64,000 bases of DNA from Convolutriloba macropyga (GCF_964194025.1 NC_134476.1:11966001-12030000), one strand, 5' to 3'; shown: positions 16,237 through 49,483, counted from the stretch's first letter. Numbers and translations: made by a program. Notes: generated by a model from the sequence alone, not told the origin.

Positions 16237-16847
16237 TCAGATCCATCGAGAGGCAGTGATACTGAACAGGGCAAAAACGGTGGAAAGAATTACTGGAAAA
16301 GTGTCCACGGAGGGTTTGACGGCAGGACTTCCTTGTGTAGTCCCCCCAACGGTACCACCTACCTGCACTGTCACCATGAGATTGGCCGGATCTCCAACGC
16401 CAAGACTTGTGGCAATAGCTGCAATAGTGGGTGGCAAAGCGGCTACATGGCTCAGGTATGCGTTCTGGACATCAGCGTTACTGAAACCAAATCCAGGGGG
16501 ATAGGTAATGGTGAACACCATCACGGCCATCTCTGTGTTCCGCTTGGCTCGTCTAGACGAGCCGCTGCTCTTCCGGAGAGTGCTAAGACATTTCCCCCTG
16601 TCCTCAAATTTAGCGCAAATTGCGTCCATAACACTGTTGACATTTTGTCTCTCTGGACTCGTTTCGTTGTCATATTCGGCCTTGTATTCGGCGAATGCAT
16701 CTTCCACAGTCGCAACGTCTCCAGAGAGAAGCCCATTGCAGTCGTCTGTCTCGCACAGAATCATGTCACCTGATGCGTTGTAGCCGGACATTTCGGCAAA
16801 GTCCTCCACATCGGCTCCAAAGTACATTTGGGTATACATGTCGATTT
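16237..16847 (-). CDS. Gene B exon 3 (CxxxxCN, second domain, furin site, GPI-type tail)
   Basis: GC-rich ORF 16237..16839 extends to the GATTAG acceptor. ILCETDDCN, AICAKFEDRGKC, SRRAKR, hydrophobic C-terminus. Confidence 0.85.
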
Positions 16848-19800
16848 CTAATCACACAATTCTCTTGTCAGATTTATGTAGGAAAATATAGCGAGTGAAA
16901 AAGAAATGGTGAACTACAGCAAACTTTTTGGGCAACCCAGGATGACGTGCGCGACCAAAACCGACCCTGATCAGACCGACTTGGGACGCCCACGGGGGGT
17001 AAACCGCGACCGCTCCACAGAGCCTAAAAAAAACTTTGTCCAAAAAAAACTTTCTATTTCTCGAAGTAAGTACCTCACAATCAAATTTCCCGCATCCGGA
17101 AATTTGAAAACAAACCCAACTTTTAAATTTAAAAAATTTAATCCCTGGCTACAAAGTTCTGTGAACACTCAAAAACGCCTTCACTGAAACTTCGTACCTT
17201 ATTTCACTAGTTTCACCAAGATTATTTTAAATTGATTCGTTTTTGAATTGTTTGAATTGTACTATATTAAAAGCGATTTAGCATCTACTCTTTGGCTAAT
17301 TGCTTGATATGTTACCATTTAACGCTCTTGGGTTCAACAAAGACGCTCGGTAATGTGCGTTCTTACATAATGTTCCGACCCCGCTCATCCACGTTATTTA
17401 ATTGACAAATCAGGAATAAATAGAAAACCTCCGAAAAAATCACATATCGTCTAACAAACAACTGAGTGAAAAAAGTGCTGGTTTAGAGGGCCGATGATAC
17501 ATGCCATTAATGAGAGTACTCGACAAGACAAACGTAAAAATCGAATACTAGGAAACGTTAATGGCGACCAAAATTCGATGTCTGAATTATAAAAGAAAAC
17601 TTAATAACAAAAAAGAATACGGAATCAGATAAAACCTGAATTCAACAAATTAATGTGTACTTCAGCAGATAATATATGAGACCTCTCAATAATGGGACTC
17701 AGTAAGAGGTCGACAAAAAGCGAAACGGGCAAAGTTCAAATATAAGTTTCTATTTTTGAAAACAACAAATTTCACTTTGACTAAAACCAATAAGTATCAA
17801 CTCGACTCATTCGGAATGTTAATTTAATCTTCATGGTAAGCAACTAAGACCTGTCTCAATCAATAATATGTCAGATGGCTACAAAAAGAACGGAAGAAAC
17901 AAAAAAACCATTTAAAATTTTAAAAACGAAACCGTTGTCGTTCATGAATAACCCTAGTTGTCGTGAATTGTGCATCTTTTCGACGCCAATTGTGCCACTA
18001 CATTAGCTTAAAGATGTGACGGCAGACAAAAAAAAATCAGAAATGGACAAACACTCAAAAATTAGAGTATTTTTGCAAAAATGCGTAGCTCCAAAGTCAA
18101 GAAACAATCAGTTGAATATAAAAACCATTAAAAAGACTAGATTAGAAGAAAGACGATAAGACCTTGCTTCACTAAAAAAAGGATGCTACCCGTCAAAATG
18201 AAACATTTCAAAATGAAACAAAACCAGATTAACTTGAGCCTCTCAGAAAGCAAGTTGTGCTTCTTAATATTGAGACTGAATCATAAGACGACAAAAAGAC
18301 AATAAATAACGACAGAACTCAAAATTTCAAAAAGTTTATCGAACCCACAGTTTTGAATCCACTAGAACTATAAGACATTGAAAACCACTAATAAATTAAA
18401 ACTAACATGGGTTCAAAATTTTTGGTGCTTTGATATTCCTCGATTTTAACTGGGTCTTCTTTGTAAAGGGTCTTTGTTGAAAAGTCAACAAAAAGAATCA
18501 GAAATTATATCGAGAACTCACAAGCTTCTTTTAAGACTCTTAAGGCTCTACACAAAACTAATTCCTAAGGCTTTACAGACATAAGTCAAAATTATAATCA
18601 ACACCAGAAACTGTATTTGGAGCAAAAGGAAAATGATGAGCCCTGTCAATAATGATGAGCCCAGGTTTAGTTAGTTGCTGACGACAACGAGAAAAAAATT
18701 GAAGTACAAAAATAATTTCATTAAAAATTACTCTTAACGTCTTCAAAACTGTTAATTATAGACTAGAATCAGTAAAAAATAAACAAATTTTTCATAGAAG
18801 CAATAAAGGTCATATATGCGCCATAAAATGCGCCGTGTGATAACAAAAAGCAACAATCAATGGAAAAAGAAAAAAAGTGCGAGAACTTTTGGGAGAAAAC
18901 GAAATTTTGCAGACATTAAAACTATAAGGTTCTCACTAAAATTTTTAAAAAGACTTTTTTTTCCTCTTTTCACAATTGGAGATGTCCTTAAAGCAATAAT
19001 TTGAACAATTTAAAAGTTAACAATCTCAAATATATGTAAACCTTAAAAAATAACAAAACTTTTAGGAATTGTCGCAGTAAGAAGGCCAAGAAACTATTAG
19101 TTGAATAGAAATCTTCTTGAAGAGGAGTTCCAATTCACTTGGAATAAATGTTGCCCTGTATGGATTGAGACTAGGCTATATGTGGTCACAACTAAGCGGA
19201 CATTTTTTTAAAAAACAAATAGATTCAAAGTCAAAAGAGGACTTACTTAACATCTGAAAGCATTGTTAGGTTCACATATAGCTCTTGAAAAAACCAATTG
19301 TATCACTGATTAATAAGTCAAAGTCATGAGGCTGCATGAAGTATGGCAAAAGAAGGCAAAATAAAATAAACAAAAAGTTTATGAAACATATAGGCAAAGC
19401 CATATAAAATACGAGTTTTACTCTGAAGACAGAATGGTTTTTGGCCTCACTTGGAAGAAAAAAGGATCTTTTTTATTTGGGCCCGGGTTTTAAATCATTC
19501 TTGTGAGTAATCAATAAAAAAATAATTTTTTTTTGAAAAGGACCACCCCCCCCCCAAATAAAAACCGAGTATTTATTGATGGGAAGAATCCAAGATGAGT
19601 CCAAACCTAGCCCTGATTTGCTGCTTGTCCAGCAAAACTTATTATTATTCCATATGTTTGCAAATTAGATCAAATTGTAAAGGAAGTAACTCAAAAACAA
19701 AAATAATTGATGTATTTTGCATAAATTTTAAGTTAATTGTTTGGAAAGCCCGCCAAGTTTTAAATCCAGAGGACTCCCAGAGCAATTAAAACTACAAATA

Positions 19801-22800
19801 TTTTTTGAAGAGTTATTGAAGATATTGGCAGCAGGTATTTGATCTTTACTTTTGCATATTTAAACAAAGTGACACTGAGAAAGGCGTATTTGGAGACATT
19901 TTTGTTTAAAAAACATTGAAATTCGAAAATTATAGCCGAAGTTTTCACCAAAAGACAAAGGTAAAACCAACCCACAAGCCTCCTTCGACCCCAGTAGTAA
20001 CACCAATAACGTTGTTGTTAACAATTTCATCAGTTCGTAGCAAAAAGAAAAAAAACTTTGGTCAAGAAAAACGAAAAGTGTTAATGAAAACAACGGAATT
20101 CCGTCTATTATTCACAAAAAGCAAAAAATTGAACCTCGATAATTCCCTGTAAGAAAAAAAAATCTTTTTGGTTTTCTTTTCTACACTTGACGGGGTTTTC
20201 TAATTATACCAGTTTTAACTCTCTGCGATGAAAACATTGATCGGCCAAAGTTTTCCGAACAAAAAAATGTGAGTATAGAGTCGATCCCCCCCAAGTGGGT
20301 CGGTACATTAAACATAGAATGATATCACTATCATGAAATCAAATGTAGTCTAAAGCTCCACTACACGGGCTATTGGTTTTAATTGTACACAAGTCACGCT
20401 AAATGAAGGTTGAAATGACTAAGGCTTCCATTGCAAACTATTTTACTTATCATTGATGCAAACAACTGCTGGTATTTTTGAAAAAGTTTAATCTTTATTA
20501 AAACACTTTCCTTTAAAAAATCTGATTAGCTAGTCTTTCATTGTTTAGAGAATGGGTTAAAGGTTAAGCTTGATTAGTTTTGTCTTTTTATCAATCAATT
20601 AAATTACGTCGATAAACAGAGTAGCACCTAACTGAAAAAAAGTGGGGTCAAAGAGTGGCTGAAAACATTTTTTGTTTTAACCTCAACATAGCACGTATAT
20701 TTCTTGATCCTCCAAAATACCAAACAAAAGGGAGCTGATAAATTTGAGTAGTGTTCTAAAATGCACTTATTGTCTTGGGTGGGCAAAACTTATGATCTTT
20801 CCAGCTATTTTGTGCGGGGGATAAAAACTTGTTAAAAAGTCACATTTTTGTGAAATTGTTAAAAAATTTGTAAAAACTTAAAAATTTCTGGCGGTCCATA
20901 ATATTCATTTCAAAGTTTAATTTTTCTTAAACACTTACTTAGTCAAAAAAACTATTCATGGTTTTTTAAAAAGTATGTAACTGAGTTGCCTTTTCCTTAT
21001 TTCAATCTCTTGATAACTTAATGTAATATATCGTAAATAAAACGAAAGTCAAAATTTGGTGGTTTTAAGCCGACATCTGATTTTATTTGATGATTTAATT
21101 GACCATTTGTAATGCCAGAGCAGTGAGTGTGGGTAGATAAAAAACTAATAAAAATTGAGTGCCAGGGCTCCACATTGAGAAATATTGTGTCTGGTATGGA
21201 ATTTGCAGCGTCAGAGGTAAAAAGGAAGCAACTTTGCAGAGATTAAGGATGAAATATTCGTATGAAAAGGACAAAATAAATGCTGAAAACAATATGAATT
21301 GTTCCATAAAAGTGCTGGAAAAGTGTTTGAAAGCGTTCAGTAAAGCGATTCATACAACCAGTTTAAATGACGGGAGAATGAACACTTGTGTTTTTTTAGA
21401 GTAAAAATGGTTATTTTTGGACAATTTTGTGCAACAGATTTCCACAAAAACAATTCCATTATGCAAATATTGTTTTGCATTGAAAATGACAACAAATGTA
21501 GGCTGTTAAATTGCGTAACACAAGATGTTTGAGTTAGAATGCAAATGTGAACACGTAACATAGTGTAAAACTTGGGGAAAATTATAGAAAATGACAAAAT
21601 TGTAACCTGAGAAACTGATGTCCGACTGAACCCTACTGCGCAACTTTGGCAAAATGATAGAATGAGCAGACTTTTTCCCTCACATATTCTAAACTAAGTT
21701 TTTTATGAAGTAAATTGTGTTTTTCCTACTTTAATAAACAATTTTCCTCTTCTGTTTTTGTTCTCCTATTGTTTTGATAGCACTAAAAATAACTATCGCT
21801 GTATGTCTACAGTGTGCTTCTATTTTTATCGAACCTGGATTTATTTTGCCTACCATTGATTGGTTGAAAACTGGCTGAAGATTAATTTTTTACTGTTACA
21901 TGTGACAATATATGTTTTTGATTTTTTGTTCAAAAGTTTTGGTCTCGGCGTTTGTGATTGGCTGGCCGAGTTTTAGGAACTATTGTCTACTACATGCGCC
22001 AAAAATGTTTCTTTCATTAGCATTAAAAATTCAGTGTGGTCGTATCCGCTTTCTTGATTGGTCAATCGAGTTCAAGCTTTATTGCCGTCTTGCACCTGTT
22101 TAAACAAGTGTTTTTTATTATCAATGACAAGGTGTAGTCACAAGTTTGAGTTCGTGTTTAAAAAGTGTTATGTCGTCCTCTCACGATCACTTTGATTTTT
22201 ATCACAATATCGCATGTTCAATGGAATGTGTATATTGTTTACTATGCATAAATTAAAACTACAGTGAAAGCAACAATTTAATTTCAAGTGGAATAGGTTG
22301 CGTTGAGACTAAAAACGAATGAAATGTTAGGCTACATAAAGCGAACAAAAGACACAAACAAAATAATTTCCAATCTAGAAGATCCAAGAAACAAAAGAAA
22401 CAATGTCTTTAATTGAGCTTTAGAAGTCGATATCAAGTGTTCGTTTCTTTGGAGCAAAGCAAAGGCTCAATGGTGGCGTCTCAAGACTGCTTCTGGCAAT
22501 TAGGGAAACTTCCGCTACCTCGGGAATTGAGGGAGCTGACGTTGAATCTGGTAGAGGCGAAGTTGCCTGAGTCATAATGCCTGGACATTCGGGGCTGGTT
22601 GGCATCCGCCAAAAAGTCTCGATAGTTTCTAGTTGCCTCCAATAGCCCTCCTGATTTTCGATTAGAGGTCCCTCTTTGATTTCATAGACATATAGAAATT
22701 TCCTTACATTTTCATCTATCGTCTCTGGACTGAAAACAATTTCTCTTACGTAGCCGGTAACATGATTGATCGTGTACTGTGCTCCTTTAATCAGTCCCTT

Positions 22801-25800
22801 CTGAAATCTGCATGATTGGATGTAGTCAAAAATTACATTTGGTAGCGCCATGTGGTTAATTGTAATCCACTCATTGTCCTGCAGCTCTTGTTTAACAATA
22901 ACGACTTTCTTTTTTTTGTAAAATTCATTTGCTATTTTTCTCAAATCGGGATTGGCCCCTTATTTCAGAAAAATTGCCGCCGAAGACATGTTCAAACTTG
23001 GAAGACAAGGTTGCTGTTAAAGAATTGTTGTGGTAGGTTATCAAATCGTAGAAACTTTTGGTAAAATTTTTCTATATAATCAAAATATAAAACAATTTGT
23101 TCTAAAACAAACAAATTTAGTATCAATCTATATAAACTGTGCTCTGCTAGTTTTTGCCACTTTGTGCATGCGAATTGAAGTCAAGTTTTAAAAATAATTA
23201 ACTTGTTAACAATAGAGAAGAAAGAGAAAAAGAAATGATGAAAGACTGTGAAAAGACTTTTATTGTTTGATAGTAATTAAAATTTAAAAAATCAAAACTT
23301 GTTAAGTTAGTCTGTCACTATTATTAGAATGACAAAATCTTATTCCCTCGTTGTTTAAGGATTGTTAATAATGAATGGTTTTCATAATAGATTGTTCAGA
23401 GAAAACCATTAAAAAGTTCTTTTGGTTGCATTTTGATAAGTAAAAAAGACTTGGCATTCATTTTGATCTATCAATTGTTTGTAGAAACTGTTTGAAAAAC
23501 ATTCACTAGAAGTACTAATCCATTTCAACATCTTATTCTGAAAAGTCAGTAAGATTCAACTATTTCCTGCCAGCAAGAGAACACTTTAGCGAGTTGGACT
23601 GCTCTGATCATGATATTGCTCTAAAGTTGCGTCCGTGTGGAATTCTAATTGCAATAGTGAACCTCTAATTGATTCACATTTTACCAGAAAAACTGTGCAT
23701 ACAGCCAACACAGAAATAAACATCATTGCAATATACTACATTTTCATAACCATGTCATTGCTGCTGTGGAGCAACTACCACAGTCGTTCAAGGATACTTC
23801 TAAACCATATACAATACCGTGTCTCTTCACTTGTTTTCAACTGCAAATTCTCGGGTCTTCTCGAACAGTGCGTTATGGCAAAAGCCTGGAAAAACTTCAG
23901 TCAGTTACAACGACCAGCCCAACCTAAATTGTTCAAATTCTAAAAAAAATTTAACAAATGTCAAAAGGATAAAGACAGTGGATGTTTAAACTCAAACTAA
24001 CTTTTTAAGAACTTGTACGATTGATAATTTCTATATCATTTATAATGTTGGTCTGTAAGGTGAGCTTTCCAAAGTACTTTATATATTGAATAGTGGCTAT
24101 GAATGTTTGCATGCTGACAGTAGTTAGACTTTAAAAAATTTAATATGGAATTGAAATCTTTTATTTAAAGTCGTGTTCTTTTGTCGTTGAAGAAAGAATT
24201 GACCAAAAGAGTTAAATAAAATTGTCAGAGCATATGATTAGCGAGGCGTAGCAAATAATTATCGTTCAAATTCATTATCGAAGGTTTTGAGTTGGCTTAA
24301 GTTTGAGTATTTGAGTTTCTTCCTTTTAAAATCGTATCAAACGGCAAAACAATATTCGGTAGTTTTGTATTGAGATTCCAAGCTGATCTGCCACCTAAAC
24401 TTTTCTCTGTGCAGCAAAAGAACCATTCAATGACTTCCGGCATGTTGCAACGCTGAAGCACTGACTATAATAAGACTATGACTCCCTCACTTGTTAGCTT
24501 TTTGGAAATTGTTTGCTGCAAAAACTCTTTAAAAAATAATTCCAATGAATACAATTTCAAAACAAAAAGCGTATTTCATCTTTATCCACTGGTGGGGTAG
24601 GTGATAATGTAGTTCTTTGTCACTTTTCTTCCGGATTAACATAAAAAGTTGAGCTTTTTCGCTCAGAAATAAAGTTTCTACGTTGAGTGCCAAAACTCCG
24701 TCAAATGTTAGTTGAAAGGATTTTGAGCAATTCATAAGTTCTGGATGAAAAAATTATGAGAAGCCTATTGCATTGAAGTTAAGTCAAAAACTAAAACAAA
24801 CTGGTTGGCACAATTGCTCAAAATTATGCGCTGCCCACCTTTGTCAAGAAAATCCAAAGCTTCAAGAGCATTGAAGTAAATGCGGTGGTTAAATCTAGCT
24901 GAAACCGCAGTTCCAACAAAAGATTAACAGTTTTTTTTACAAAAAAATTGGCTCAAATTGATTTTCTGGTAGTGAAAAGGACTAGTGCTATTAATTCCAA
25001 GGTATGCTTGATTTGCTTCCATTGCAATTATCATACAACGCACTGGCAAAAAATGTCCTAATAGCTCCAACTTATTATTCCAGTTGTAGCTAAAAAAAAC
25101 CTTCGTGGCAATACTTCTGGATATTGCCACAGGTGGATAATGCTATTGAAACACGGCAGGTGTTTTTAGTAGAGTTTTTTCAATTTCCGTCAAAACATGA
25201 TCCGCTACTGTTATTTTTCTAACGTACCGATTAGCTTCAATTACTTTATTTTTGTAATGTTTGTTCAAATGGGAAAATACTGTACAAATATTTTGTAGAC
25301 CTAAAAGAAATTCACAAAGTGACAACACAAAGAAAATCTTCATCACAAGTTATCACAAACATAACTCGTCAGCTTTCTAAAAAAATAGTTTTCCTGAGAG
25401 TTAGCTAAACGAGTTTTTCTGGCCGCAACGTCAATCGCGCAACCATCCGTTCCGTCAATTTTAGCTGGTTCGTCCTCATAAAAAAAATCCTGAAAAACTA
25501 GTTATTTGTTTCTTGCAGTTTTTCTAGACAACACTTCAATTTAATTGAAAGCTTTGTTTGCCTTGTTTCCTTTTGTGTAAGAACTTTTAACACTATTTTA
25601 ACGCAGATACAGTGCGTTCTGTAAAAAAACAATGTAGAGCGTTGTTGCTTAAGTATGGCGCGTCTGTGTTTGCAGCGTTAGTGACTGTCCTGCAATCGCC
25701 GTCATTGTTTCGGGAGATTTTTTATTTAATTTCAAACAGAAGTTTATGTAAACAGATGAAAAAGTTTCTGTCGCCCAAAACTTCAAGCTCAAGCTGTGGA

Positions 25801-28800
25801 CCGTCCATGGACAAGGAATATGATTGTCAAACTTTTAAAGTAAAAGCATTGTCAAGAATAATCAGCAGGAAGCTCTTTTTCAAGGAAATCAGGTGTGGTT
25901 TCTGTTGCCTCTGCTGGCAGTAAAATTAAAAACCATTTTGAACATTAGAAAGAAAATTTGAGCAACTGCTCGTCAAAGCAACTTCTTACTAACTCCTTGG
26001 TTTGGTTTATCAACGTTGGTTTTCAATTTAAGTATTCTTCATGTTTTTGATTCGCCCACTTGTGTCCGTACGGTTTTTTTGAACAGTTGATTTTATTGCC
26101 TGTTTTGGATATTTTTCTTTGTAACTACCTCTGCCAGCTCAACAACTGCTTGAACAATTAGTTCACGTCCAATCTTTTTTACTACAAGCCAAAAAATTCT
26201 TCTTGCAATTGGCAACGCGGCTTTGCCAATACCTGCAGCTAAAGCCCCAAATTCAATACCTCATTAGCGACAGTGTCCGGAAATGTATGGTGACACTGAT
26301 TGCTGTTGATAGTAGGCTTCTGTCTAGTCGATCTTTTTAACATTCAAAGTCAAAATAAGCTTTTCTGTTCCAGCGAATGGAACTAATTATCCGGTTTCTG
26401 TACGCAATTGAATTTGAATTGAGTGAAATTTTTTTGACAATAACTTTTTGTATATCAACAATTCTGTGTGTTGGCTCGATTTCGCAGGGGCTACAGTTTT
26501 TCAGGGGTTGTTTTGAATCCATGACTCGGATAGGAGGAGCGTTAGTATCATCTACGTATTAATACTCAATTATGTTAACGTAAACAAAAATCACTTGCTT
26601 CCCTGCAGACAAATAAAAAGGATAATCACCAATGAAAGTTTTTTCTTCGTCATCTGCCATGGTCAGACTTTCAAAGTGTCTAACATGTTTTCTTCAATAT
26701 GATAACGAGACCCATCCTTAAAAATATTGAAACCTAGTATGCATGAAATTTTGTTATCCGGAAAAGTAATTTTTCCGTTTTAACCGAAAATTAGGAGAAA
26801 AACTCCATTGATTTTGTTGAATTGATAGTCAAAATTAGGTATTCCGGTAGCTGTTTTTAAGGATCTCAAAAAATGGTCATGACTTCCATAGTAACCAATT
26901 CCAATGATACCTTGTTCTCCGTATGTTCTGGAGACAGCTTCTAAAAGAATATTTTTCTCATAAAACTTAAGGCCTTCAGAAGGAAATCTCTTCAAATCAA
27001 TTATGTTCGTTGATTTATTTTTGACCGGAGTTTCACCTAGTGTAACTCATTAATGCGCATCTAGATTAATCTCTTCATTGACACAGAGTCCCGAAAGAGC
27101 CCTTAACTTCTGTACCAGCATCTAACAACAGCCTTTTAGTTCGCTTATTTTTTTTAATCATTTTCTTGAAGGCATCGACTGTTGTTGCTGCGTACTTTAA
27201 TTTAAATGATTGGACCCGTAGATAACGTGAGAGACAGTCAACCGCAAGCAACAAGTATTCTACATCTTTGTTCTCTTTTGCTAGCTTATCCACAATAGCT
27301 AAGTCTAGCAACCAAATTCGTCTACGTAGGCAATAATTTTCAGTGTTGGATTTTTGTTCTATACTTCGTATGCTTTGTGTGGGCATTTCTGCTCTCCAGA
27401 AACAAATTCACTCTACTTCAAATTTGTGCTTTTTTGTAGTTTTCCTACGCTTCCGTATGCTGCAGGACCTTTTGTATATATTATCTCGAGTAGTTTTTTT
27501 CCATTCATCAAAAGAGACCCAGTTTTTCTCCTCCTCCTCCTAAGTTCTGTTTTCCTTTGAAGTTCGGAAACCACTTCAGGCATCTACGGATTGCTCTATA
27601 AGTAATTGGCTGATATTTTGTGCTTGATTCTTTTTGGCGAAATAGTTCTCTTTTTAGTTTTTCGTTTGGTAATTCTATGAATTCCTTTCTAGATCGCAAT
27701 TTTAGCGTTACTGTTGATCACGAAGCTTTTTTTTAATGTTTGAAGCCTCTGGAATCTTGAAATAATCTGAATTCCTTTGTTTTTCAGTTGGTTACTGCAA
27801 ATCACAGGGAAAAATGGGATCATTTATTCCTGTTGCTGCTCCGTCAACAATGAGCTTTTTGGTTTCGTCTCTAACAATTTTTCTGACTCTTTAATGAGGT
27901 TAAATAATTTTTCCGTCGTGGCGCTAGCAGGTTAAGATTTTGAAAATTTGGCTCCTATTTTTAACTCAGTGGGATGAGTTGTTTCCCTTGTATCCAAAGG
28001 TTCCAGGTATTCATTTTTTCATTGTTAGTGTTTTCATATGGTCGCATACGACTCAAAAAAGAAAATTGAGCAGCTGTATGATGATTTCTGGGATCATTTA
28101 CAGTTTGTAAGGAATATGGTTGCTCTTTCATGAACTGATTTTTCGGTATCAAATTAAATTTTTCAGCAGTAGACATGGTTTAACTCAAATGGATGAAACA
28201 AAACTTAATAATGAGTTGAATTAGTTCGGAACCGGTTGTTTCTAGTAAAAGCGCTTGTCGTTTATCCATTGAAGAAGTTTTCTTGATAATACCTTCAAAT
28301 ATGTGTCTGTATTTTTCTAAACCTCTTGGTTTCACTCTAACATGACTCAGTAAAATTCTGTGACGGCATTCACATAAAACCAGTATAACATCACAATCAC
28401 AACTACGTATATAATTCCTTAACTGTTTTGGTTGTAAATACCCCATTTGCTTAGCTACAGACAATTTTTTCTCTATCATTGTTCAGATGGGTTAATTCTG
28501 CTTTATCAAATTGAAGATAGAACAATGTAGGACCTGGCTTAGTAACATTTCAACAGTATCGTGAACAATTAGAATTTTTTGGATCAATATCGATAAGCAA
28601 ATGCCCAAACCGTTCGTTCGTTGCCAATTGATAGCAATGCTTTAAAAATATAACAAGTTTTAACAGCTTGCCTAAAAATTCGACTGGTCAAATATTGCCG
28701 GCTGATTTGGACAAAATGTTGTGTTGCGTTCAAGTCTATTGTAAGAGACCAGTTGCTCTGTTGACAAAACTCTGCTTTATATAAATACCATTATTGTTTT

Positions 28801-37800: not shown

Positions 37801-40800
37801 CTCAATGTTCATTCTCCCGTCATTTAAACTGGTTGTATGAATCGCTTTACTGAACGCTTTCAAACACTCTTTCAGTACTTTTTTGGAACAATTCATATTG
37901 TTTTCAGCATTTATTTTGTCCTTTTCATATGAATATTTCATCCTTAGTTTCTGCTTTCTTTTTACGCCTGACGCTGCAAATTTCATACCAGACACAATAT
38001 CTCTCAATGTGGTGCCCTGGCACTCAAGTTTTATTAGTTTTTTATCTGCCCACACTCACTGCTCTGGCATTACAAATGGTCAATTCAATCATCAAATAAA
38101 ACCAGATGTCGGCTTAAAACCACCAAATTTTGATTTTCGTTTTATTTACGATATATTACATTAAGTTATCAAGAGATTGAGATAAAGAAAAGGCAAGTCA
38201 GTTACATGCTTTTTATAAAACCATGAATAGTTTTTTTTTGACAAAGAAAGTGTTTAAGAAAATTTAAACTTTGAAATCAATATTATGGACCGCCAGAAAT
38301 TTTTAAGTTTTTACAAATTTTTTAACAATTTCACAAAAATGTGACTTTTTAACAAGTTTTTATCCCCCGCACAAAATAGCTGGACAGATCATAAGTTTTG
38401 CCCACCAAAAAAATTTGGCATAAATTTCACAAGTTTTTCTCAACGCACAAAATTTGGAAATATTTTAGTTTTTGTCCCCCATAAATTTGAGAAAATTTGT
38501 AAAGTTTTTGTCCTCCCGGCACAAATCGAGAAAACTTTTACAAGTTTTTGTCCCTCCGGCAAAATCGAGGGACAAATTTTTTGACACCCAAAAAATGCAC
38601 CGCACGAATCGTAACGGTGTGGTACGTCCCCACCCGCGACAAAATGTTTTGGTCGATTGTTCACGGGTCACTTCCCCTGTGACAATACGCATTTTAGTAT
38701 ACTAATAATTTGTTTCGAATAAAACTGAACAGAGAAAGAGTGAATTTTTGAGATACATTCAGTCTGGCTACAAACGATTTTATTAGTCCTAATTATCAAA
38801 AAGTTTCCTTCAAAAAGTAGCTCGTAGAAAACAGGAAAACAAAAAAGTTACCCGTGCTTGCATTAATTTTTAGAATTAAGAATTTGGTGAGAGATGACAA
38901 CACTATTAATAGCTACAATTAAACTATAACAAAAGATAGTTCTACTAAATTAATTCAAAATTTATTATTTGATTCCATGCCATGAATGGTGCCGACTGAA
39001 ATAATCACCCTCATCATCAGTACTCGCTGTGTAATAAACTTTAAAACTTTGTTGTGTGAGATCACATAAAAAATCGCTTTTTGGCATTCAAGTTTTCGAA
39101 TTGTCCGGACACGCGAAAAAATGGCAATTACATGAATTTCTCCGGTTGGGCATTGTTTTCTGTTTGCTGTTCCAATGATACATGTCAACGTGTACATTAG
39201 GCAGAAATGAAACACAACTGTACTGGTAAATAATTGCATAAATCTCCCTGAAATTGTTTTGCGGTTCTAATTAAGCCCTAATTGCTGATTGGCACCCAAT
39301 GATAGTTTGGATCACGAGGAAGTCATTATATTTATTCAAGAAATCAATAAAATTCAAACGAGTTTCCAATAGCATTTAATGGCAAGTTTTAAGCTAAGCA
39401 TACATATTTTTCAGGCGGATCAGACCAGAATTTATTGGGACCAATTTTCGTTAGACAATCAAATTCTTTGTACAGTTTTCTAGGAAATATCTTATAGAAA
39501 CAAATTACATTGCGCTGGCTGTAGAATTCAAAAAAGGACTATTTCTTGCCAGGAATCAAGTGACCAACTAAAAGTTCTCATAAAAAGATGGCCCAATTTT
39601 TAAATAAAACTAGACACAAAAAGTCGCTATTTTCAAAACTGTCGACTTTGGCTGTCTAGCTTTTTTAAAAATTTTAATAAGTTATAAGTTTTTATGTTTT
39701 TTTAATGTTAGTTTTGCAAGTTTTATTACTGCAATTTTAGGAAAAACATCCAGTAAAAACTAACTAGGCTCAAGTTCCGCGGCTGTCATGTTGCCATCCG
39801 GATCTTGGAAGAACTTCTCGACGCCCCCCAACACAGTGCAGGCCAGGTATTCTGCATCGTGGGTCTGTACTTGCGGGTCGTCCTGTCTCAGTGTGAAATA
39901 CATTGAGAAGCAGGGGGTTCCGGGCACCGTCAAATCCATTCCCTGCCCAGCTGTTACGGCCTCAGCAGTGCATGAACTCATTCCTAATCTGTCCATGAAT
40001 GCTGCCGAGTCGTCAAATTGGTACATGTACATGCTCAAGTTGGCACTCATTCCCAACTTGCCTAAAATCATAAATTCCTTGGGTCATCATTTGGCGTCAG
40101 GACAATTTACCCAATTTCCCGACTTTACCCAATGCCATTATACCGAGTGTCAATATGCCCAACCTGGCTGCCGTATTACCCAATGCCATTTTGCCAATGT
40201 TAACTTTGTTTTACCCTGTCGTTAAAATTACCAGAATGACTATTTTGACATAAAACTGCTCGTGGCACTTGATATGAACTATGTATCATTAAATACTGCT
40301 TGTCATGCTATTCTAACTTCACTGCTTAATTTGGCCTTGAATTGATTTGCTATTAGAGAAGCGGAAAAAAATCGAAGGTTAAAGGTATACTATCTCTGTA
40401 CAAATTGTTCCAAATTTCTGATTCATGCTATCCACATTTCTCAAAATATCTTAAGCAAAAGGCCATTTGTTTTCCCAAAAGTGTGAACCTTTAAGAAACC
40501 TGCATTACAATCTAATATCCGAAAACAAAAAAGAATATAAATAAAAGCTGCCACAGACATTGGTGAATTTAACTCAGGGCACCAACTAACTGGGCAGCAG
40601 CTAAATTTTTACTCAAGTATATTCAACTTTTCTCCGTCATTGATCATGACTGCTGTTAGAATTTCGATCAAACTATAGTCTTGAACTTAGTTAGATTTAT
40701 TAAAAAGAAAGTTTAACTTACCAGATTAATAAGACATGAGCAAACTGATTCTAGTCACAAAACTTTTATGAACGAATCGTCAATAAATGGTGCTTAGAAT

Positions 40801-42448
40801 CAATTTTCGGTTCAAACTGATGAATCTAGATTACTATTATTAGAGAGATTATTGGATGTAAAATTTTCCCAGCGTGTATTGAATGCTTATGATACTACCG
40901 GAAATGTGAATGAACTCTTGGGTGTCAATGCATACTATCTATGGTATCCCTCGCAACTAATTTCTAGGAAATTTGCAGAAGCAAACCATATTGCGTAACC
41001 GTTGCGACCACTGCTAAAAATCATGGTGCTAAGATTAGTTTTGTATCTTGACTTTCTTGCACTGATAATGGGTCATTTTTGAGCAGCTAATTTTTTAGCC
41101 TTTTTTCATCCCCAAAATCAAATCACCACCTTGATCTAATAATCAGATCTCTCCTGTAAATCTCTGAATTCTAGTGTAAAATATCATTTTTGTCATTCTC
41201 TCATTTTTGAGAAACTATTTTTCTACTTAGGTAAAAACGCTTTTTATTCCGCTCGAGAAAAATCCATAACCCAACAGCTGCAGTTTCAAAGGAGCGATCA
41301 ATTCTAAGTATGCAAACGTTGCGGTGACGGGCCAACAGAACGGAAGTAAAATAGATCGGAAAGCATGAATAAGTGAGAGTAGATCGAAAATTGTTCTTTA
41401 TTCTCACTGGCTGATATGTGCTAATTGGAAGCTGACGTAATTTTGCCGTATTTGATCATGTTTTGCAAACTATATGGCTATTCCTTAGGGGCTTCTAGGA
41501 CTTAATATCAAACTATTACAACAAAGCAAAATATCACGACCGAACATGTAATTCGCTGTAATATAGGTGAGCACTCAAACCTGATGGGGCAAAGAGCGAA
41601 TTCGATAAATTAAATTTCGATCCATTGTCCCAATAATTGCTTCGATCTGCAGGTCTTTTCGATCTGTTGTCCTAGAACGAAATATTATTTCAGGCAAACT
41701 CTCAAATTCGAATGCTTTTAGTTATAACCCTTTATACAGATTTTCCCGTTGCCTTCAAAAAAGATTTTCCATTTGACAAAATCCAATTTAATTTTTAATC
41801 AGAGTCTCTAACACGCAAGCTTTGTGAGCTAACCTCTACAACTTGTCTTAAAGTCTCAAGTTTGGTCATATCTTATAACGCATTCTCTCGTTCTTTTTTG
41901 ATGCTCCAGTTTTCATATCAATATCCAATTATACTTTAAACAAGCACAGCTTTTTATCAAGCTTATCTCATGCACAATTTACATTTGGTTCTTCTTTCTG
42001 AACCCAAGAGACACAATGTCCGTACGGTTGGGTGAACAGAATAACTTCTTTAATCAAATCGTTAAGTTTTATGATTTTTCGACTTCTTGTTGCCTTTTCC
42101 GTTCTTAAGTTTTGTATTTAAATGTTTACGTTTTCGTTACCTTTCAAAGAATTTGTCGAAAGTCATTTTAAGTTGATGAATTTGTGTATCATGTATTACT
42201 TTTACACTGCCCGGATTGGAACTTGAAGAGAATGGGTAAGATAAGGGTGTATCTAGCTGTTATGGTGCGTGGGGGGGGGGGGGGGGTTGTCACTAACCAA
42301 GTAGCACACTCAGTGCCGTTTGCTGCCAAGTTGCAATTGAGCTGCAATTCATGCATGAGATACAGGATGTCGGCGTCTGAGCATTCACTTGGGGTACACA
42401 ACTCAGCAACCCGACAACGAGCACCACAACCAAAACCCACGACTTCAT
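16237..42448 (-). CDS. Gene B: predicted GPI-anchored secreted protein, 352 aa; Ly6/uPAR(three-finger)-like Cys domain plus furin-site domain. Exons 42448-42298, 40061-39765, 16847-16237
   Basis: Splice junctions, all phase 1 and in frame: CTTG|GTTAGT at 42298; ATTTTAG|GC at 40061; CCTA|GTTAGT at 39765; GTGATTAG|AA at 16847. Exon lengths 151+297+611=1059 nt. Signal peptide MKSWVLVVVLVVGLLSCVPQVNA, CISCMNC, PGTPC, LCETDDCN, RRAKR and hydrophobic C-terminus (PVILSTVFALFSITASRWI). Exon-by-exon colinear with gene A. Confidence 0.8.
16870..20780 (+). mobile_element. Unclassified decayed interspersed element (family X)
   Basis: Reverse-complement homology with ~2040..4620 (17345..17435 vs 4495..4600; 17565..17645 vs 4245..4325; 20120..20295 vs 2040..2222). 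Confidence 0.55.
18909..24314 (+). repeat. Left arm of ~5.4-kb inverted repeat
   Basis: Reverse-complement match to 31967..37740. Mirrored ORFs: 19595+/36853-, 21912+/34541-, 23635+/32406-, 22420-/34039+. Confidence 0.95.
22420..22944 (-). CDS. Uncharacterised element-borne ORF (174 aa) in the left arm; its mirror at ~33680..34224 (+) has a premature TGA
   Basis: Longest open frame in the arms; Ser/Pro-rich tail ending PKKRTLDIDF. True start uncertain. Confidence 0.45.
   Translation of the reverse strand: MRKIANEFYKKKKVVIVKQELQDNEWITINHMALPNVIFDYIQSCRFQKGLIKGAQYTINHVTGYVREIVFSPETIDENVRKFLYVYEIKEGPLIENQEGYWRQLETIETFWRMPTSPECPGIMTQATSPLPDSTSAPSIPEVAEVSLIARSSLETPPLSLCFAPKKRTLDIDF
24200..24570 (-). 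pseudogene. Polinton adenain-like cysteine protease pseudogene
   Basis: RVFAANNF..IVSASALQHAGSH*MVLL (degenerate GxHW)..ADQLG. The PTQNQNSK.. segment is retained only in the right-arm copy (~31985..32060, + strand). Confidence 0.6.
24600..25880 (-). pseudogene. Polinton major capsid (double jelly-roll) pseudogene, internally deleted
   Basis: N-terminal SMDGPQLELEVLGDRNFFICL; middle IEANRYVRKITVADHVLTEIEKTLLKTPA; C-terminal LVFDLTS..HPELMNCSKSFQLTFDGVLALNVETLFLSEK. Confidence 0.8.
26050..26325 (-). pseudogene. Polinton/adintovirus small YYxxQ..QxGxG amphipathic protein remnant
   Basis: EAYYQQQSVSPYISGHCR**GIEFGALAAGIGKAALPIARR..KKIGREL, located between penton and major capsid. Confidence 0.6.
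26337..27000 (-). pseudogene. Polinton minor capsid (penton) pseudogene
   Basis: SAGKQVIFVYVNIIEY*YVDDTNAPPIRVM matches the penton FVYxxIxExQxVGDxxxPLLR motif. Confidence 0.7.
27075..27510 (-). pseudogene. Polinton retroviral-like (rve) integrase, truncated
   Basis: YTKGPAAYGSV N-terminal motif; IWLLDLAIVDKLAKENKDVEYLLLAVDCLSRYLRV..TVDAFKKM..LLDAGTEVKG. Confidence 0.88.
27508..28176 (-). pseudogene. Disrupted Polinton ORF between the small ORF and the integrase
   Basis: MSTAEKFNLIPKNQF.. begins immediately after the previous stop and breaks into fragments ending near 27540. Confidence 0.4.
28180..28479 (-). CDS. Small Polinton-type ORF downstream of the ATPase (99 aa)
   Basis: Open ORF with IRSCDCDVILVLCEC..ILLSHV..LEKYR pattern resembling the small conserved Maverick ORF usually next to the ATPase; positional support. 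Confidence 0.5.
   Translation of the reverse strand: MIEKKLSVAKQMGYLQPKQLRNYIRSCDCDVILVLCECRHRILLSHVRVKPRGLEKYRHIFEGIIKKTSSMDKRQALLLETTGSELIQLIIKFCFIHLS
28490..29117 (-). pseudogene. Polinton packaging ATPase (FtsK/A32-like) pseudogene
   Basis: FMAVVGPSECGKA (GPSGCGKA in the repeat copies) Walker A, LLIIDESCEE Walker B, GIYIKQ..TIDLNAT, YQLATNERFGHLLIDIDPK; frameshifts and stops. Confidence 0.85.
28828..31966. repeat. Tandem array of three ~1075-bp units (starts 28828, 29903, 30979), each an ATPase 5' half plus an integrase fragment
   Basis: CAAATTCTTTGTCATTATAAATTTC recurs at 1075/1076-bp spacing; triplicated ORFs (MSRYKFMHSLWLGE.., MPIYSCCLII..). Confidence 0.95.
31967..37740 (-). repeat. 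Right arm of inverted repeat (~5.8 kb; extra ~65 bp near 32000..32062 and ~280 bp at ~33089..33365)
   Basis: Mirror of 18909..24314. Outer end ...TAATGTCTGC at 37740; inner end TCAAATACTCAAAATTAAGCCAAC. Confidence 0.95.
37746..38406 (+). repeat. Direct duplicate of ~35211..35860 appended to the right arm
   Basis: Identical ORFs 35338..35619 and 37883..38164. Confidence 0.93.
38350..38710. repeat. Subterminal AAGTTTTTGTCCC-type short repeats and candidate Polinton terminus
   Basis: About six variants of aagttttt(g/a)tccc, then a GC-richer stretch ending ..GTATACTAATAAT, resembling a degenerate (ACT)n Polinton end. Confidence 0.45.
39765..40061 (-). CDS. Gene B exon 2
   Basis: TTTTAG acceptor and GTTAGT donor. 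LTVPGTPCFSMYF...LACTVLGGVEKFF aligns with gene A exon 2 LSYPGTPCTAMYF...LSCLALTGVENFF. Confidence 0.85.
40095..40225. repeat. ~15-bp minisatellite (TTACCCAATGCCAT variants) next to the gene B exon 2 acceptor
   Basis: Direct read. Confidence 0.7.
42298..42448 (-). CDS. Gene B exon 1 (signal peptide + CxxCxxC)
   Basis: ATG at 42448, hydrophobic leader, TPTSCISCMNC, GTTAGT donor. Matches gene A exon 1 (TPSACYDCITC). Confidence 0.8.
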
Positions 42449-44231: not shown

Positions 44232-44851
44232 TCAGTTAAATTGTCGTGCGACAAACAGATAGAGAACCAAAACAGCGAGAGTGTAGGTTGCTGCAATTTC
44301 ATTGGCCCCCGAAGCTCCTCTCTCAATTGCGACCGTGGGCTCGGCATCGAACCCGCTGAAATCGTAAGTTCCGTCCAAAATGACCGCAGCCAAGGCAAGG
44401 ACATAAACAGCGACCAGATCTGCAGTGTTATAGCTAGTTCCCTGAATTGTCTCCGTGGCAACTGATGCCCTCGCTGACATCGTCTGGCGTCGGGACCTCT
44501 TGCTCGATGCAGCTACCGAGACTATGTCGACAAAGTTGCACGTTAAGGCACCCGGTAGTCGCTCGACCATAGCCTCACATAGCATCTCGAGCGCTCCTCG
44601 ACTGTTGTTATAAGCTGCAGAGTCCATGTCATTCATGTCAGCACTGTAAGTTCCAATCACGAACGAGATAGTGAACTTGTCGTTAGCGGGTGGCATGTTA
44701 CAGTTGTTCGAATCTGAACATAGGGTGAACCCGACGGTAACTGAGGTAACCGAAACTGCATCGCTCGAGGTCACCATTTTCAAGTCGGTTTGGAGAGCAG
44801 CACCAGTTACGGAGGCCAAAGCTGAAACAATGAAAAACATAATTATACGCA
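44232..44851 (-). CDS. Gene A exon 3
   Basis: TTCAG acceptor; CSDSNNCN, MLCEAMVERLPGALTC, KRSRR, GPI-type tail. Candidate AATAAA on the minus strand at 44142..44147. Confidence 0.85.
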
Positions 44852-47800
44852 CTGAAGGTCAAAAAAGTAATATCTAGTTCTATGAAGCACAAAAACTCGA
44901 TTTAAATTGATATTACACTAACTTGTAATCATAATTTGGAAAAGATTTTAACACCATTGATCCTCTACGCTATTGGTTTTTTCTGTTTACTGAGAAATTT
45001 TGATGGATTTTACCAACTGTGCATTTGAATTTGGGTATATGGTCAGCTAGTATTAAATCAATTTCGCAGTCAACGCATCAACTCACGTTCATACGTTCAT
45101 GGTTAGGCAACATCACTAGTGTAGTATATCTATTGTGTAAAAACAATTTTGAAATTGGCCACATCTGGTGTAATGTTGGAGTGAAAAGCTCTGCTAAAGG
45201 AAAAGTTTTTCCGAGAAGCGAACTCAATTCGTTAATAAAAAATATTGAAAAATGTATGTTGTCATCAGAGGCGAAGAGATAATTGTGAGCAACAAACAGT
45301 CAATTAAATAGTTGGTTAAAAAGACAAGAAAAACTTTCATCAACACTGTTTTTAGCTTTTGTTAAAATTAAAAAATTCTAAACTTATTGTCACAAAACTG
45401 ATTGTTCACGAACAGAGACACATAAATTATAATTTAACTTCAAAACGAAAACTTTTAGTCTACTATTGTCGGTAAAACTATAACTCAACTTTACAATTTG
45501 TTTGGTCAATGGTATTATACTCCGTCAACAAAGGTACGTTTAGTGCACAACTTCAACCCGGAGGTTGCTGGCGGGGCAAATCAGTGCTGATTCAGCCTAT
45601 AGACATTCTGTTTTTGTGGATATCCAGTACTATGCTTGTCACAGTTTACACAGGCTAGTCTTGGATCTTGAGTAATAATTACTGGGTGAAAAATAATATG
45701 TAGCGCTTAACTCCCGCAAACAAAGTTTGCTTTATATGCGATTCGAACTTTCGCGTGGGTAATTGTAACATTTAATTTGCGTAGCAAGTTGTAACCATTA
45801 AGCCACATGAGCTTTGTGGTAGTAGCCTACAAACTAGTTTAAGAAACATAACCGGGCGAAATGCTCTCGAACGACCGGTGAGCGGTTGGCTTCGTCAGTA
45901 GCTAGGCACGGTTTAGTGAGGCTAGCCTTACCTTATTTGAAGGGGCGTAAGTGAGCACAGCGGGGGGGGGGGCAGTGCAACGGGGGCTGATGGGGTGGAA
46001 AGAGGGGGGTGTCAATCTCCAAGAACCGCCCTTCGCACGATAAGTATAAGTCTCCAAAACAGATTCTATGAATCACATCCTCGAAGACTAGTGAACTGAA
46101 AGGCTCTAAGAGCACTTAATGCCCGCTGGGCGCTACCTGTTTATCCCGTTTTTGAGGACGAAAAGTCAAATTCGTCAGACCAAAAATTGGTCAAGAGAAA
46201 AATTGCATAAAAAAGACCGACAGGACTAATATAATTGCTACAAACTTCGTTTGAGAGCAATTAATAAAAAGTCTGTATACTACTTTAGTAATTACCAGTT
46301 ATAAGCTACAAAAGTATGACATTATTACGCCCAGACTTAATTTTGGGATAAGAGCAGTTTTCAGACAATACAGGATAAATTTATCCTGACCGAACCCTGT
46401 GAACTCAATATAATCATAAAGAAGATCAACTACATATAAAAAAACTTAAAATATTCTGGAGATGCAATATTTTAGAGCTGAATTAAGTTTTTATCTTGAA
46501 ATGTGCTGTTTCAACGTTGACATGCTCTGAGACTCAAGTGCAGGCACCTGCTAAGCTAACTGGAGCAGCCAAATACATAGCTAATTCATTGCTGTCCAAA
46601 TATATGACAAATTATAAATGCCGAAATTGTTCAGATCTTTTGCCGTGTTGCTCTGTCGGCTGAAGCAGAAAAATAGTTCGGAAGCAAAAAAAAAAATACG
46701 AAATCCTAATTTAAACTGCGCAAGTTGACAACTTCACGCTATACGAAGTTGAATTCACATACGAATGATTTTTTTTCTCTTAACTAAAGAAACTAAAGTT
46801 TTAATGTGAAAATTTTATACCCCGATGGTACTCTTCTAGAGTTGTCCTCTTAGAGGAAGGCAAAATCTTTAGAGAGCAATTAAATCTATACACTGTTTCT
46901 TAGAGTATCCATAATCCCATAAATGTGTGTAGATAGTCTAAAGAAATTACCTCCCTCTACTAAAACTATGAAAGGTTTTGCCAAAACAGAGATATCTGAA
47001 AAGAAATTTAGGTGTTTCCGATAATATCCTCCCACTTAATGGGTATGTAACGTATACCCCCTAAACGTTATTTTTTTACCATAATTGCGGATATAATATG
47101 AAGGACCCAGAAATTTAGGGGCCTTTGAGGTGAACTAACATTGCTGGCACTAAACAACCATTTTAAATTGGGCGATACTATAATAAAAACTCTGAGTTGA
47201 TAGAAAAATATATAATCTAACCGAGAGGATGACTCACCTCCATAAATCAAACAGTTTGAATATTTTTTGAGAAATGCACATATTAAAGCAAATCTATTTA
47301 GTTGGGACTTCTTAGAAAAAAATCAACTCTATATTTTCCATGGCTTGGAATGAAAATTTGAACCAAATATAGAAATACAGTTACCAACCCAGTTTGATTT
47401 CAAAAATAAGAGTCTAATTATTGCACTTTTGATGAAGCCAAAAAACTAACCGTTCCATTTTTATGTTCCCGTACTAACCGTCCCCCCCCCCCCCAATTAC
47501 GTTATGCACTCCCAATTATAGCACGTATGCCATTACATAATAAATCATTATGATAATATCATTGCACGTCCGATTGGGGGGAGGGGGAGGTGCAAAAATA
47601 TAAACCCACTAAGCTGGAGAAAGGGTGCACTTACCGAAAAGGTGTAAAAATTTCATCTAAATACAATTAACATATCAAATTACACATACCCAACGCATAC
47701 GCAGCTGCTGTAGTAGAATTTAGTTCACTGAGTGGTTTGAAAAAGTTCTCCACTCCAGTTAGAGCAAGGCACGATAGTTTCACGTCCTTCAGACCCGCAG

Positions 47801-49483
47801 AGGTGTCTGGACCGAAGGCATTGAAGTACATGGCCGTGCAAGGGGTTCCCGGGTACGATAGTGTCTCAGAAGGTGGGTTACCCGAAGTCGGACAGGCGTC
47901 CACCATCATTGGGAAATCGGGAGCATCCAACCACGAATTCAAATCGTTCGTATCCAGCAAGTTGCCTGAACACAACAGAACTCACAAAAAATACCCACTT
48001 TCGTTTTCAAAAGTAATTTGTGTTTTAGTCTGTACCGGAACCCCCTACTCCCGAGTCACCAAATTACTATCTTGATCTATGAATCAGATCTCTGGTAAAT
48101 CTCCTGTGAAAATTACTTTGCTATTCAATCAAATCTTGAGACAAACATTTTTCTATTTGAGTAAAAACCGCTTCCATTCCACCCGCGAAAGAGTCTTAAC
48201 TCAACATAAAACAGCTGGACAAAATTAAAAACAAAAAATACGCACAACAGACTCACTGATACGTAATAAAAACTAATTTTTCCATAATTAGTAACATTGC
48301 GTTTGCCTAAATTGAGTTTGATACTAAAATCTTCTTTGAAATGCAACGTTTTTCTAAACGTTAGGTAATTTTCATGTCTTCCCTTACATACTTATTAGGC
48401 AATGAAAAAATGCTTTCAAAATCGGATACCGATATTTTTATTCAAATTTTGAGAAACCAACCAGTTTGTTTGAACCAGAATTTTACTTGCAAACACATTG
48501 TGCTAATCATTACGCAACTGGAGATAAGCTAACGAACGTGGGTATCTCTTGTAACTTTTTCTTGTTATTTTTCTCGTTTCTCAGGGCTTCATCTCTCTGA
48601 TCGCGTTTGCATTGCATTATCAGTCACATAGCAAAGACATCAGACACATACTATTAACGGATTCTGAACATTTTATATCAATCCTAGCTAATCTTTTTAC
48701 TCGTCTTTGATATTTTAATCAAATTTGGCAGCAACATTTTACCTCCTGCGCAGGTAGTCTGTATAAAACAGTTAATAGTCTTACGACGGCTCATTTTTTC
48801 CGAGCGATCACATCAGTAAATCTGTTTCGTTAATATCCTTAGTGTAAATTAAGATTACATTTTTAAACTTAATCAGTTAAAGATGTTAGAAATGTTAGTT
48901 AAAAATGGCAATTTTGGGCAAGCGTTGCCGAAAAACTTTCTTCCGCTACGCTTTTTAACAAAAGTACTACTGTCCACCTTTACAGAAAGCAAGAATAATG
49001 GCCAAAAATGGTTTTTTAACTTGCAAAAAATCTCTTCTGATACGGTTTTAGCAAAAGACATACCTGTTTTCCGACAAAAAAAACGGATCAAGTATTTCCA
49101 TTATAGTTGTTTACAGGTGGCAATCACAATTTGCTCAAGAGTTTCTAAGAAGCTATACTGTTTTCATCAGCAATTTATTGTTCAAATCGCTGATATCCTC
49201 TATCATTAAATTATTTTTAGTAGAAATTTTTGTCAGTCAGTGTCGGCAAGAAATTCAAGATTCCTGAATGATAACTTTTTGAGATCTAGGATGTCAGATT
49301 TTTTCTCGCCAGATTTTACTTACTGAAAGCATCATTGAAAATAGCCGACGCTGCTGTGCCATTGCTGCACGTGATGCAATCGTAGCAAGCTGAGGGGGTG
49401 CTCCCAGCCTGGACAGATCCAGCGCTCAGAACCAACAAAACTGGCGCCCACTGCAGAAGACTCCTCGCTGAAAATGTTCTCAT
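44232..49483 (-). CDS. Gene A: paralog of gene B, 351 aa predicted GPI-anchored Ly6/uPAR-like protein. Exons 49483-49324, 47965-47690, 44851-44232
   Basis: Phase-1 junctions: TTCA|GTAAGT at 49324; GTGTTCAG|GC at 47965; TTGG|GTATGT at 47690; CCTTCAG|TG at 44851. Exon lengths 160+276+620=1056 nt. Signal peptide MRTFSARSLLQWAPVLLVLSAGSVQA, CYDCITC, PGTPC, LCSDSNNCN, SKRSRR, C-terminal TLAVLVLYLFVARQFN. Confidence 0.85.
45842..46268 (+). repeat. Dispersed repeat (AAACATAACCG..GAGAGCAATTAA family) with a ~200-bp internal insertion
   Basis: Colinear with 62868..63090 apart from 45922..46127; partial copies near 57070..57200, 58318..58440, 61088, 62337. Confidence 0.75.
47690..47965 (-). CDS. Gene A exon 2
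   Basis: TTCAG acceptor, GTATGT donor, homology to gene B exon 2. Confidence 0.85.
49324..49483 (-). CDS. Gene A exon 1
   Basis: ATG at 49483, signal peptide, CYDCITC, canonical GTAAGT donor. Confidence 0.8.

Follow-up and report, generated by a model that had tools for sequence, protein, structure and literature searches.

Tandem paralogous genes of the acoel Convolutriloba macropyga encode candidate surface proteins with a conserved furin-type site in a predicted SEA-like domain

SEA domains are cleaved in a β-hairpin, and their fragments, which contribute two strands each, stay non-covalently bound (PMC10556640). Notch is processed by furin within its SEA-like domain, and in KIAA1549, which carries three SEA-like domains in tandem, the furin site belongs to the domain nearest the membrane (PMC13570299). 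Here we analyse a stretch of 64,000 nucleotides (the window) from a 67.9-Mb chromosome of Convolutriloba macropyga (GCF_964194025.1 NC_134476.1:11966001-12030000), a species for which a chromosomal genome note has been published (PMC13650328). Two head-to-tail genes on its minus strand, gene A (LOC142346041) and gene B (LOC142345605), encode paralogous proteins with a signal-peptide-like N-terminus, an outer region with eight cysteines (domain 1), a membrane-proximal region with two more (domain 2) and a hydrophobic tail. Structure prediction indicates that these regions are probably two tandem α/β (ferredoxin-like, SEA-like) domains, with a furin-type site in the membrane-proximal one.

The DNA of the window is eukaryotic, AT-rich and devoid of runs of N, with a GC content of about 34% against about 52% in the exons of the pair. 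Both genes were rebuilt from six open reading frame (ORF) pieces and have three exons each. Exon 1 of gene A (49324..49483) encodes the signal peptide and a CYDCITC motif, exon 2 (47690..47965) the PGTPC...C..GVENFF motif with the core strands β2 and β3 of predicted domain 1, and exon 3 (44232..44821) the closing helix and strand of domain 1, followed by C-x5-CN, the entire domain 2, the hydrophobic tail and a stop codon. Gene B follows the same plan, with exon 1 at 42298..42448 (signal peptide and CISCMNC motif), exon 2 at 39765..40061 (PGTPC...C..GVEKFF) and exon 3 at 16237..16847 (end of domain 1, C-x4-CN, domain 2, hydrophobic tail and stop). All four introns are GT...AG and in phase 1 (donors GTAAGT, GTATGT, GTTAGT and GTTAGT) and lie at equivalent positions in the two proteins. 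They measure 1358 and 2868 nt in gene A and 2236 and 22917 nt in gene B, the last one (16848..39764, 22.9 kb, GTTAGT...TTAG) being inflated by a palindromic repeat block of about 18.6 kb.

These junctions are identical to those of two RefSeq models, XP_075254640.1 for gene A (P0014, 359 residues) and XP_075253855.1 for gene B (P0009, 385 residues), each named "uncharacterized protein". The two spliced genes are therefore real and already annotated, with their function left blank. The original prediction, made from the DNA alone, had called the pair hidden, which it is not; its assembly of six ORF fragments into two paralogues with one exon plan and canonical phase-1 splice sites is confirmed with small corrections, all six pieces lying where it had placed them. 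Counted from the Met of the signal peptide, protein B has the 352 residues then proposed, whereas protein A has 341 instead of 351 when the annotated exon-3 acceptor (44821) is used; the longer form evidently came from an alternative AG 30 nt upstream (44851), which adds VRIIMFFIVS and is not used by RefSeq. The RefSeq models differ from ours in the start only, taking in-frame ATGs at 49537 for A (54 nt, or 18 codons, upstream of the signal-peptide Met) and at 42547 for B (99 nt, or 33 codons), so that 18 or 33 residues precede the hydrophobic signal core. No paper was found on the LOC and XP identifiers of the two genes.

Two further observations concern the sequence of gene B itself. A homopolymer of about 15 C (~42270-42290, minus strand) stands at the start of intron 1, a few bases past the exon 1 donor (GTTAGTGACAA followed by the C run), and might interfere with splicing or with accurate sequencing. 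Exon 3 exists in a second assembled copy (P0010, P0012; an ENA contig of 158474 bp), which differs from the window by two amino acids, P to H and, near the tail, F to V, both non-synonymous; it is most likely an alternative haplotype.

Proteins A and B are about 21% identical overall. Their exon 2 pieces share 44% identity over 43 residues (E 3e-10) and their exon 3 pieces 22% over 114 residues (E 8e-5), a similarity which, on these alignments, exceeds chance and marks the two genes as paralogues. Each mature protein has ten cysteines, at 33/36/39/78/96/119/180/186/227/240 in A and at the matching positions 29/32/35/81/101/125/181/186/227/236 in B. A third gene copy was not found in the window by tblastn. 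An exhaustive HMMER search with an exon-2 profile against 1.84 billion representative proteins returned two true relatives, P0002 and P0004; five further matches were rejected as compositional (long and T/A/G-rich, four of them FN3-rich and one with a PGTP repeat). P0015 and P0016 were added by metagenome pattern scanning and another word-based search. A word-indexed search with gene B exon 3 returned itself only, and one with a mixed alignment nothing beyond the window's own fragments.

Four uninterrupted colinear homologues were thus collected (P0002/L001, P0015/L002-L004, P0016/L005 and P0004). They lie on transcript-like contigs of 1.4-1.8 kb from Joint Genome Institute (JGI) metatranscriptomes, a Tara Oceans run and the Logan assembly of SRR6233792, a run on which no paper was found. 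Each is one unbroken ORF of about 360 residues with the full family layout: signal peptide, C-x2-C-x2-C, more cysteines, [PS]GT[PN]C, GVEKFF, C-x5-CN, two cysteines, KRRRRR and hydrophobic tail. Such colinear messenger RNAs in another organism lend independent support to the exon order described here. All members of the family keep ten cysteines, PGT.C, GVE.FF, C..CN and R-x-x-R unchanged. The C-x4-CN spacing given in the original prediction for both proteins applies to B; A and the homologues have C-x5-CN.

The homologues are 35-36% identical to B and 24-25% to A, so that either the duplication of A and B predates the split from that organism or A evolves faster. The best explanation of these comparisons is that A and B are old tandem paralogues of a lineage-restricted orphan family, recorded so far only in C. 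macropyga and in marine metatranscriptome contigs. Since the window's proteins stand in the clustered libraries as exon-3 fragments, more paralogues of C. macropyga may have escaped notice in this way, and a two-member family in this genome cannot be claimed. In two of the plankton homologues, P0015 and P0016, the signal peptide is preceded by a conserved in-frame Met and a leader of about 24 residues (MGF.K.GKIASSEKQQGRSCGVA) common to both (L002/L003/L004 135-250 and L005 104-175). Upstream in-frame ATGs are likewise present in both C. macropyga genes; they may be the true start codons or mark an upstream regulatory ORF.

Searches against known families were run with the six exon pieces and the P0009, P0014, L001 and L002 proteins. 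At E<=10, Pfam gave no significant family and specifically no UPAR_LY6, Toxin_TOLIP/snake-toxin, QVR, SEA (PF01390) or Zona_pellucida match; sub-threshold noise (NCD3G, DUF5100, SecD-TM1) was discarded. Neither the N-domain, the C-domain nor the family as a whole gave a match below E 0.3 in sequence-profile searches of the PDB. An hhalign comparison of the N-domain with the C-domain, which tests for internal duplication, gave a probability of 0.1 and no similarity. By these sequence searches the gene pair belongs to a family without detectable characterised relatives, as had been proposed.

Both proteins begin with signal-peptide-like N-termini (VQA|G in A, VNA|Q in B). At their C-termini, small residues are followed by a short spacer, 11-16 hydrophobic residues and 4-5 final residues, without cytoplasmic extension: A ends ..GASGANEIAATYTLAVLVLYLFVARQFN, B ends ..GSPAVKPSVDTFPVILSTVFALFSITASRWI and the homologues end ..SSAPSLKPF..LL..LLVFGILASKRC. 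Such tails fit a glycosylphosphatidylinositol (GPI) signal better than a transmembrane anchor, and their features are compatible with GPI attachment. The predicted signal peptide and hydrophobic tail of the two proteins have held up in this respect. One N-x-T sequon occurs at the same column in all family members.

The polybasic site is K-R-S-R-R in protein A (44487..44501, minus strand, residues 253-257 of the 341-residue form) and R-R-A-K-R in protein B (16540..16554, minus strand, residues 248-252 of the 352-residue form). No full-length sequence departs from R-x-x-R (R60 and R63 of alignment A7), in agreement with the furin-type site first proposed. The best-conserved stretch of domain 2 stands directly after the site (AVIVFSLTFPP vs MAVMVFTITYPP) and fits a buried core strand rather than a discarded stub. 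The cysteine pair of domain 2 lies wholly upstream of the site, with no cysteine downstream, so no disulfide can join the two predicted chains.

Two AlphaFold2 runs were performed. The first, on gene A exon 3 with a two-sequence alignment, gave a mean predicted local distance difference test score (pLDDT) of 48 and the order strand, helix, strand, KRSRR, strand, helix (pLDDT ~50-65). The second used mature B with five relatives, a six-sequence alignment, and gave one model with a mean pLDDT of 71.6 and a predicted template modelling score (pTM) of 0.60; the other four models reached 41-49. In the confident model, domain 2 (residues 167-290) has a pLDDT of about 90 and is predicted as β170-180, α191-207, β212-219, the SSRRAKR loop, β233-242, α250-262, α266-275 and β283-288. 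The order of elements in this domain agrees between the two runs, confident for B and low-confidence for A. The conserved R-x-[KR]-R would thus occupy an exposed loop inside domain 2: in B the polybasic loop has a low pLDDT, appears disordered and is flanked by two high-confidence strands, forming the β2-β3 hairpin. The loop sequences, SSRRAKR|N, SSKRSRR|Q or NKRRRRR|S, stand in place of the autoproteolytic G|S[VI]VV. A second domain with two cysteines and a conserved polybasic site had been foreseen, but with the site after the domain and not within it; the SEA-like character suggested for this membrane-proximal domain is plausible, with structural support from the predicted β-α-β-β-α-α-β order.

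Domain 1 (residues 1-160) is modelled with a pLDDT mostly of 60-70 (full range 46-75). Its predicted order is β-α-(45-residue insert)-β-β-α-β, with helices at 17-32, 46-53, 121-130 and 133-147 (about 49 helical residues) packed on a four-stranded sheet. Strand 1 carries C-x2-C-x2-C, strand 2 PGTPC-MYF and strand 3 L-C-L-GVE; a long helix spans the exon 2/3 junction and C-x4-CN closes strand 4. Within the domain, the hydrophobic motifs that are conserved (MYF, L.C..L.GVE.FF) coincide with predicted core strands. The best Foldseek matches in the PDB were the two-domain ferredoxin-fold proteins 4hhu, 4ney, 2nyi and 1u8s, whose alignments cover about 230 columns (E 2e-4 to 2e-3, probability up to 0.99) and which favour a tandem arrangement; single ferredoxin-like domains came next. 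Foldseek against viral structures gave small generic α/β proteins only, and the low-confidence gene A exon-3 model gave nothing significant.

On this basis, we propose a model which, in our judgement, has about an even chance of being right: each gene would encode a furin-processed, non-covalently held, GPI-anchored two-chain surface glycoprotein of two α/β domains. The protein would enter the secretory pathway through its N-terminal signal peptide and could be glycosylated at the conserved N-glycosylation sequons. Domain 1 would be stapled by its eight cysteines, and domain 2 would hold one more pair, probably a disulfide. A furin-type proprotein convertase would cut R-x-[KR]-R in the β2-β3 hairpin of the membrane-proximal domain. 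The N-terminal chain of about 225 residues would then stay docked non-covalently on a lipid-anchored stub of about 80 residues, because each fragment gives two strands to the same sheet; the SEA domain of MUC1 and the Notch heterodimerisation domain are precedents for docking after the cut. The outer part would be sheddable by force or unfolding.

Several points weigh against this proposal. The fold comes from the single confident AlphaFold2 model of five, built on an alignment six sequences deep, and the signal peptide and GPI signal were recognised only from hydropathy and visual inspection. A Pfam SEA match is absent, as is any PDB sequence match. The template modelling scores (TM-scores) of the Foldseek matches are low, at 0.2-0.33, and no SEA, Notch heterodimerisation domain or dystroglycan structure figures among the 50 matches listed; the fold class is therefore supported and SEA membership is not.

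The model of domain 1 is moderately confident (pLDDT 60-70, in one model of five), which leaves room for a novel disulfide-rich fold. The main alternative to the favoured model is accordingly that the C-terminal half is SEA-like and the N-terminal eight-cysteine region is a new fold, which a shallow alignment cannot resolve and which AlphaFold2 would have forced into a generic α/β form. The failure of four models out of five and the 46-75 pLDDT range of residues 1-160 agree with this, as do the lack of similarity between the N and C halves in hhalign and of any Pfam or PDB sequence relative. The regular order of predicted strands and helices speaks against it, together with the position of MYF and L.C..L.GVE.FF on core strands and the alignment of two-domain ferredoxin-fold proteins over about 230 columns. 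We regard a new N-terminal fold as unlikely, though it deserves to be kept in mind.

A second alternative concerns the outcome of cleavage. The proteins might be precursors of a shed ligand, the cut freeing the N-terminal 225 residues as a soluble factor and the GPI remnant merely routing the precursor. One strictly conserved polybasic site would suit such a precursor, and with no cysteine past the site there would be no disulfide tether. The cut would, however, bisect a domain predicted to be compact, with high pLDDT to either side, and the SEA-type arrangement holds its fragments together (PMC10556640). The segment after the site is moreover the most conserved of domain 2, and we consider a shed ligand rather improbable.

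The original prediction had read the N-terminal 160-170 residues as an expanded Ly6/uPAR (LU, three-finger) domain whose inserted loops are long and which is carried by a cleavable, GPI-anchored stalk of SEA-like type. The N-terminal C-x2-C and the invariant C-x4/5-C-N that closes the eight-cysteine region recall this family, many members of which are GPI-anchored. The profile searches gave no UPAR_LY6, Toxin_TOLIP or QVR match, however, and the adjacent CC doublet of the LU signature CC-x4-CN is nowhere present. The cysteine frame of about 160 residues is twice the size of an LU domain (~70-100 residues). AlphaFold2, at moderate confidence, makes about 49 residues of this region helical, with the strands in ferredoxin-like order, and its gene A exon 3 run also has a helix where a third finger would be. 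No three-finger protein was found among the 50 Foldseek matches listed. An LU domain, having failed each test applied here, is therefore very unlikely, and the Ly6 label is withdrawn; the SEA-like, furin-site and GPI parts of the earlier interpretation are plausible and gain structural support. A zona-pellucida-like module, in which ten cysteines precede a consensus furin site, a hydrophobic patch and a tail of the GPI or transmembrane type, would share with zona pellucida precursors a similar cysteine count and the order of furin site, hydrophobic strand and membrane anchor, but is barely credible, being effectively refuted by the predicted helices: Pfam gave no Zona_pellucida match and the prediction is α/β, not two immunoglobulin-like β sandwiches.

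Evolutionary rates were estimated from three plankton coding sequences (L001, L002 and L005), among which the number of synonymous substitutions per site (dS) is 0.14-0.26. The ratio of non-synonymous to synonymous substitution rates (dN/dS) over the whole protein is 0.5-0.9 for all three pairs, and for the N-domain it reaches 1.3-1.7 when L002 is compared with L001 and L005. Replacements are clustered in patches between the conserved cysteines. The sequences evolve fast; positive selection in the plankton homologues is only suggestive, with one-sided Fisher tests giving p = 0.047 and 0.25. A variable and fast-evolving outer surface suggests a role in recognition or adhesion. Going further, the favoured model can be extended to an acoel-specific recognition molecule, in which a GPI-anchored, convertase-nicked SEA-like "breakaway" module presents a diversifying, disulfide-stapled outer domain. 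We hold this extension to be doubtful. Such a molecule might help a photosymbiotic animal without much canonical immune signalling to tell self from non-self or to recognise gametes or algal symbionts; its binding surface would in that case consist of the outer-domain patches that show dN>dS in the plankton homologues.

Intron 2 of gene B holds a large palindrome (19014-37634) with arms of about 5.2 kb each (~19014-24187 and ~32163-37634), 94-99% complementary in most segments, around an 8-kb centre. This centre contains three tandem copies of a 1076-bp unit (28828-31943), as well as integrase-core (rve) fragments at 27078-27386 and 31724-31993. A foldback-type mobile element, an inverted duplication and an assembly artefact could each explain the palindrome. 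At the edge of its right arm, a 300-nt direct repeat with 100% identity (35261-35560 and 37806-38105) suggests that about 2.5 kb was duplicated locally very recently. A 174-residue ORF without Pfam match in the left arm (22420-22944, minus strand) has a truncated mirror copy in the right arm (34039-34269, plus strand), and is possibly a protein of the repeated element. Elsewhere, an intact-looking reverse transcriptase ORF of 629 residues (5362-7251, minus strand; RVT_1, E 3e-38) and, upstream of it, a coiled-coil-like ORF of 257 residues without Pfam match (9021-9794, minus strand) look like a fairly young non-long-terminal-repeat (non-LTR) retrotransposon. A second retroelement remnant (53218-54759, plus strand) comprises a 286-residue ORF with the end of a reverse transcriptase domain and an adjacent 180-residue ORF without Pfam match. 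An exon-like ORF at 59982-60314 (minus strand) contains a mitochondrial carrier repeat (Mito_carr, E 2.5e-7) and is probably part of an adjacent host gene, upstream of gene A.

The immediate use of this work is to correct the Ly6 label and to record the existing annotation of both genes. If the favoured model is right, a nicked-but-held design of the SEA type would have arisen anew in a very small lipid-anchored protein unrelated in sequence to the known SEA, Notch or mucin families, giving a data point on how often such a mechanically labile module arises, and acoel biology would gain a candidate fast-evolving surface marker.

Among known systems, EpCAM and Trop2 are small surface glycoproteins with a cysteine-rich N-terminal part, a C-terminal α/β domain classed as SEA-like and dibasic cleavage. 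The gene pair resembles them in layout, and no sequence similarity to them turned up. EpCAM has a thyroglobulin type-1 (TY) domain, a transmembrane helix and a cytoplasmic tail, and is cut in the TY loop, not in the α/β domain. With Ly6/uPAR proteins (CD59, Quiver/Sleepless) the pair shares its small, cysteine-rich and secreted nature, the GPI-type tail, the N-terminal C-x2-C and a last cysteine followed by an invariant Asn; it differs from them in the absence of a profile match and of the CC doublet, in its double length, in the predicted combination of helix and sheet and in a 120-residue domain before the anchor. Canonical SEA domains (MUC1, MUC16, enterokinase, agrin) offer the predicted β-α-β-β-α-β order, the juxtamembrane position and the β2-β3 cleavage point (PMC10556640), but the pair has no PF01390 match, carries a polybasic site in place of G|SVVV and adds an intradomain cysteine pair. 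The Notch heterodimerisation domain and KIAA1549 differ from the pair in several respects: the pair shows no detectable homology to them, lacks LNR and EGF modules, has a cysteine-rich outer domain and is only about 300 residues long when mature. Its predicted anchor is of the GPI type instead of a transmembrane helix with a signalling tail, so that no output by intramembrane proteolysis would be possible. In both systems, as predicted here, an α/β sandwich adjoins the anchor, the convertase site lies inside the domain and a non-covalent two-chain product is expected. The likeness extends furthest with KIAA1549, where SEA-like domains are arranged in tandem and the site falls in the membrane-proximal one (PMC13570299).

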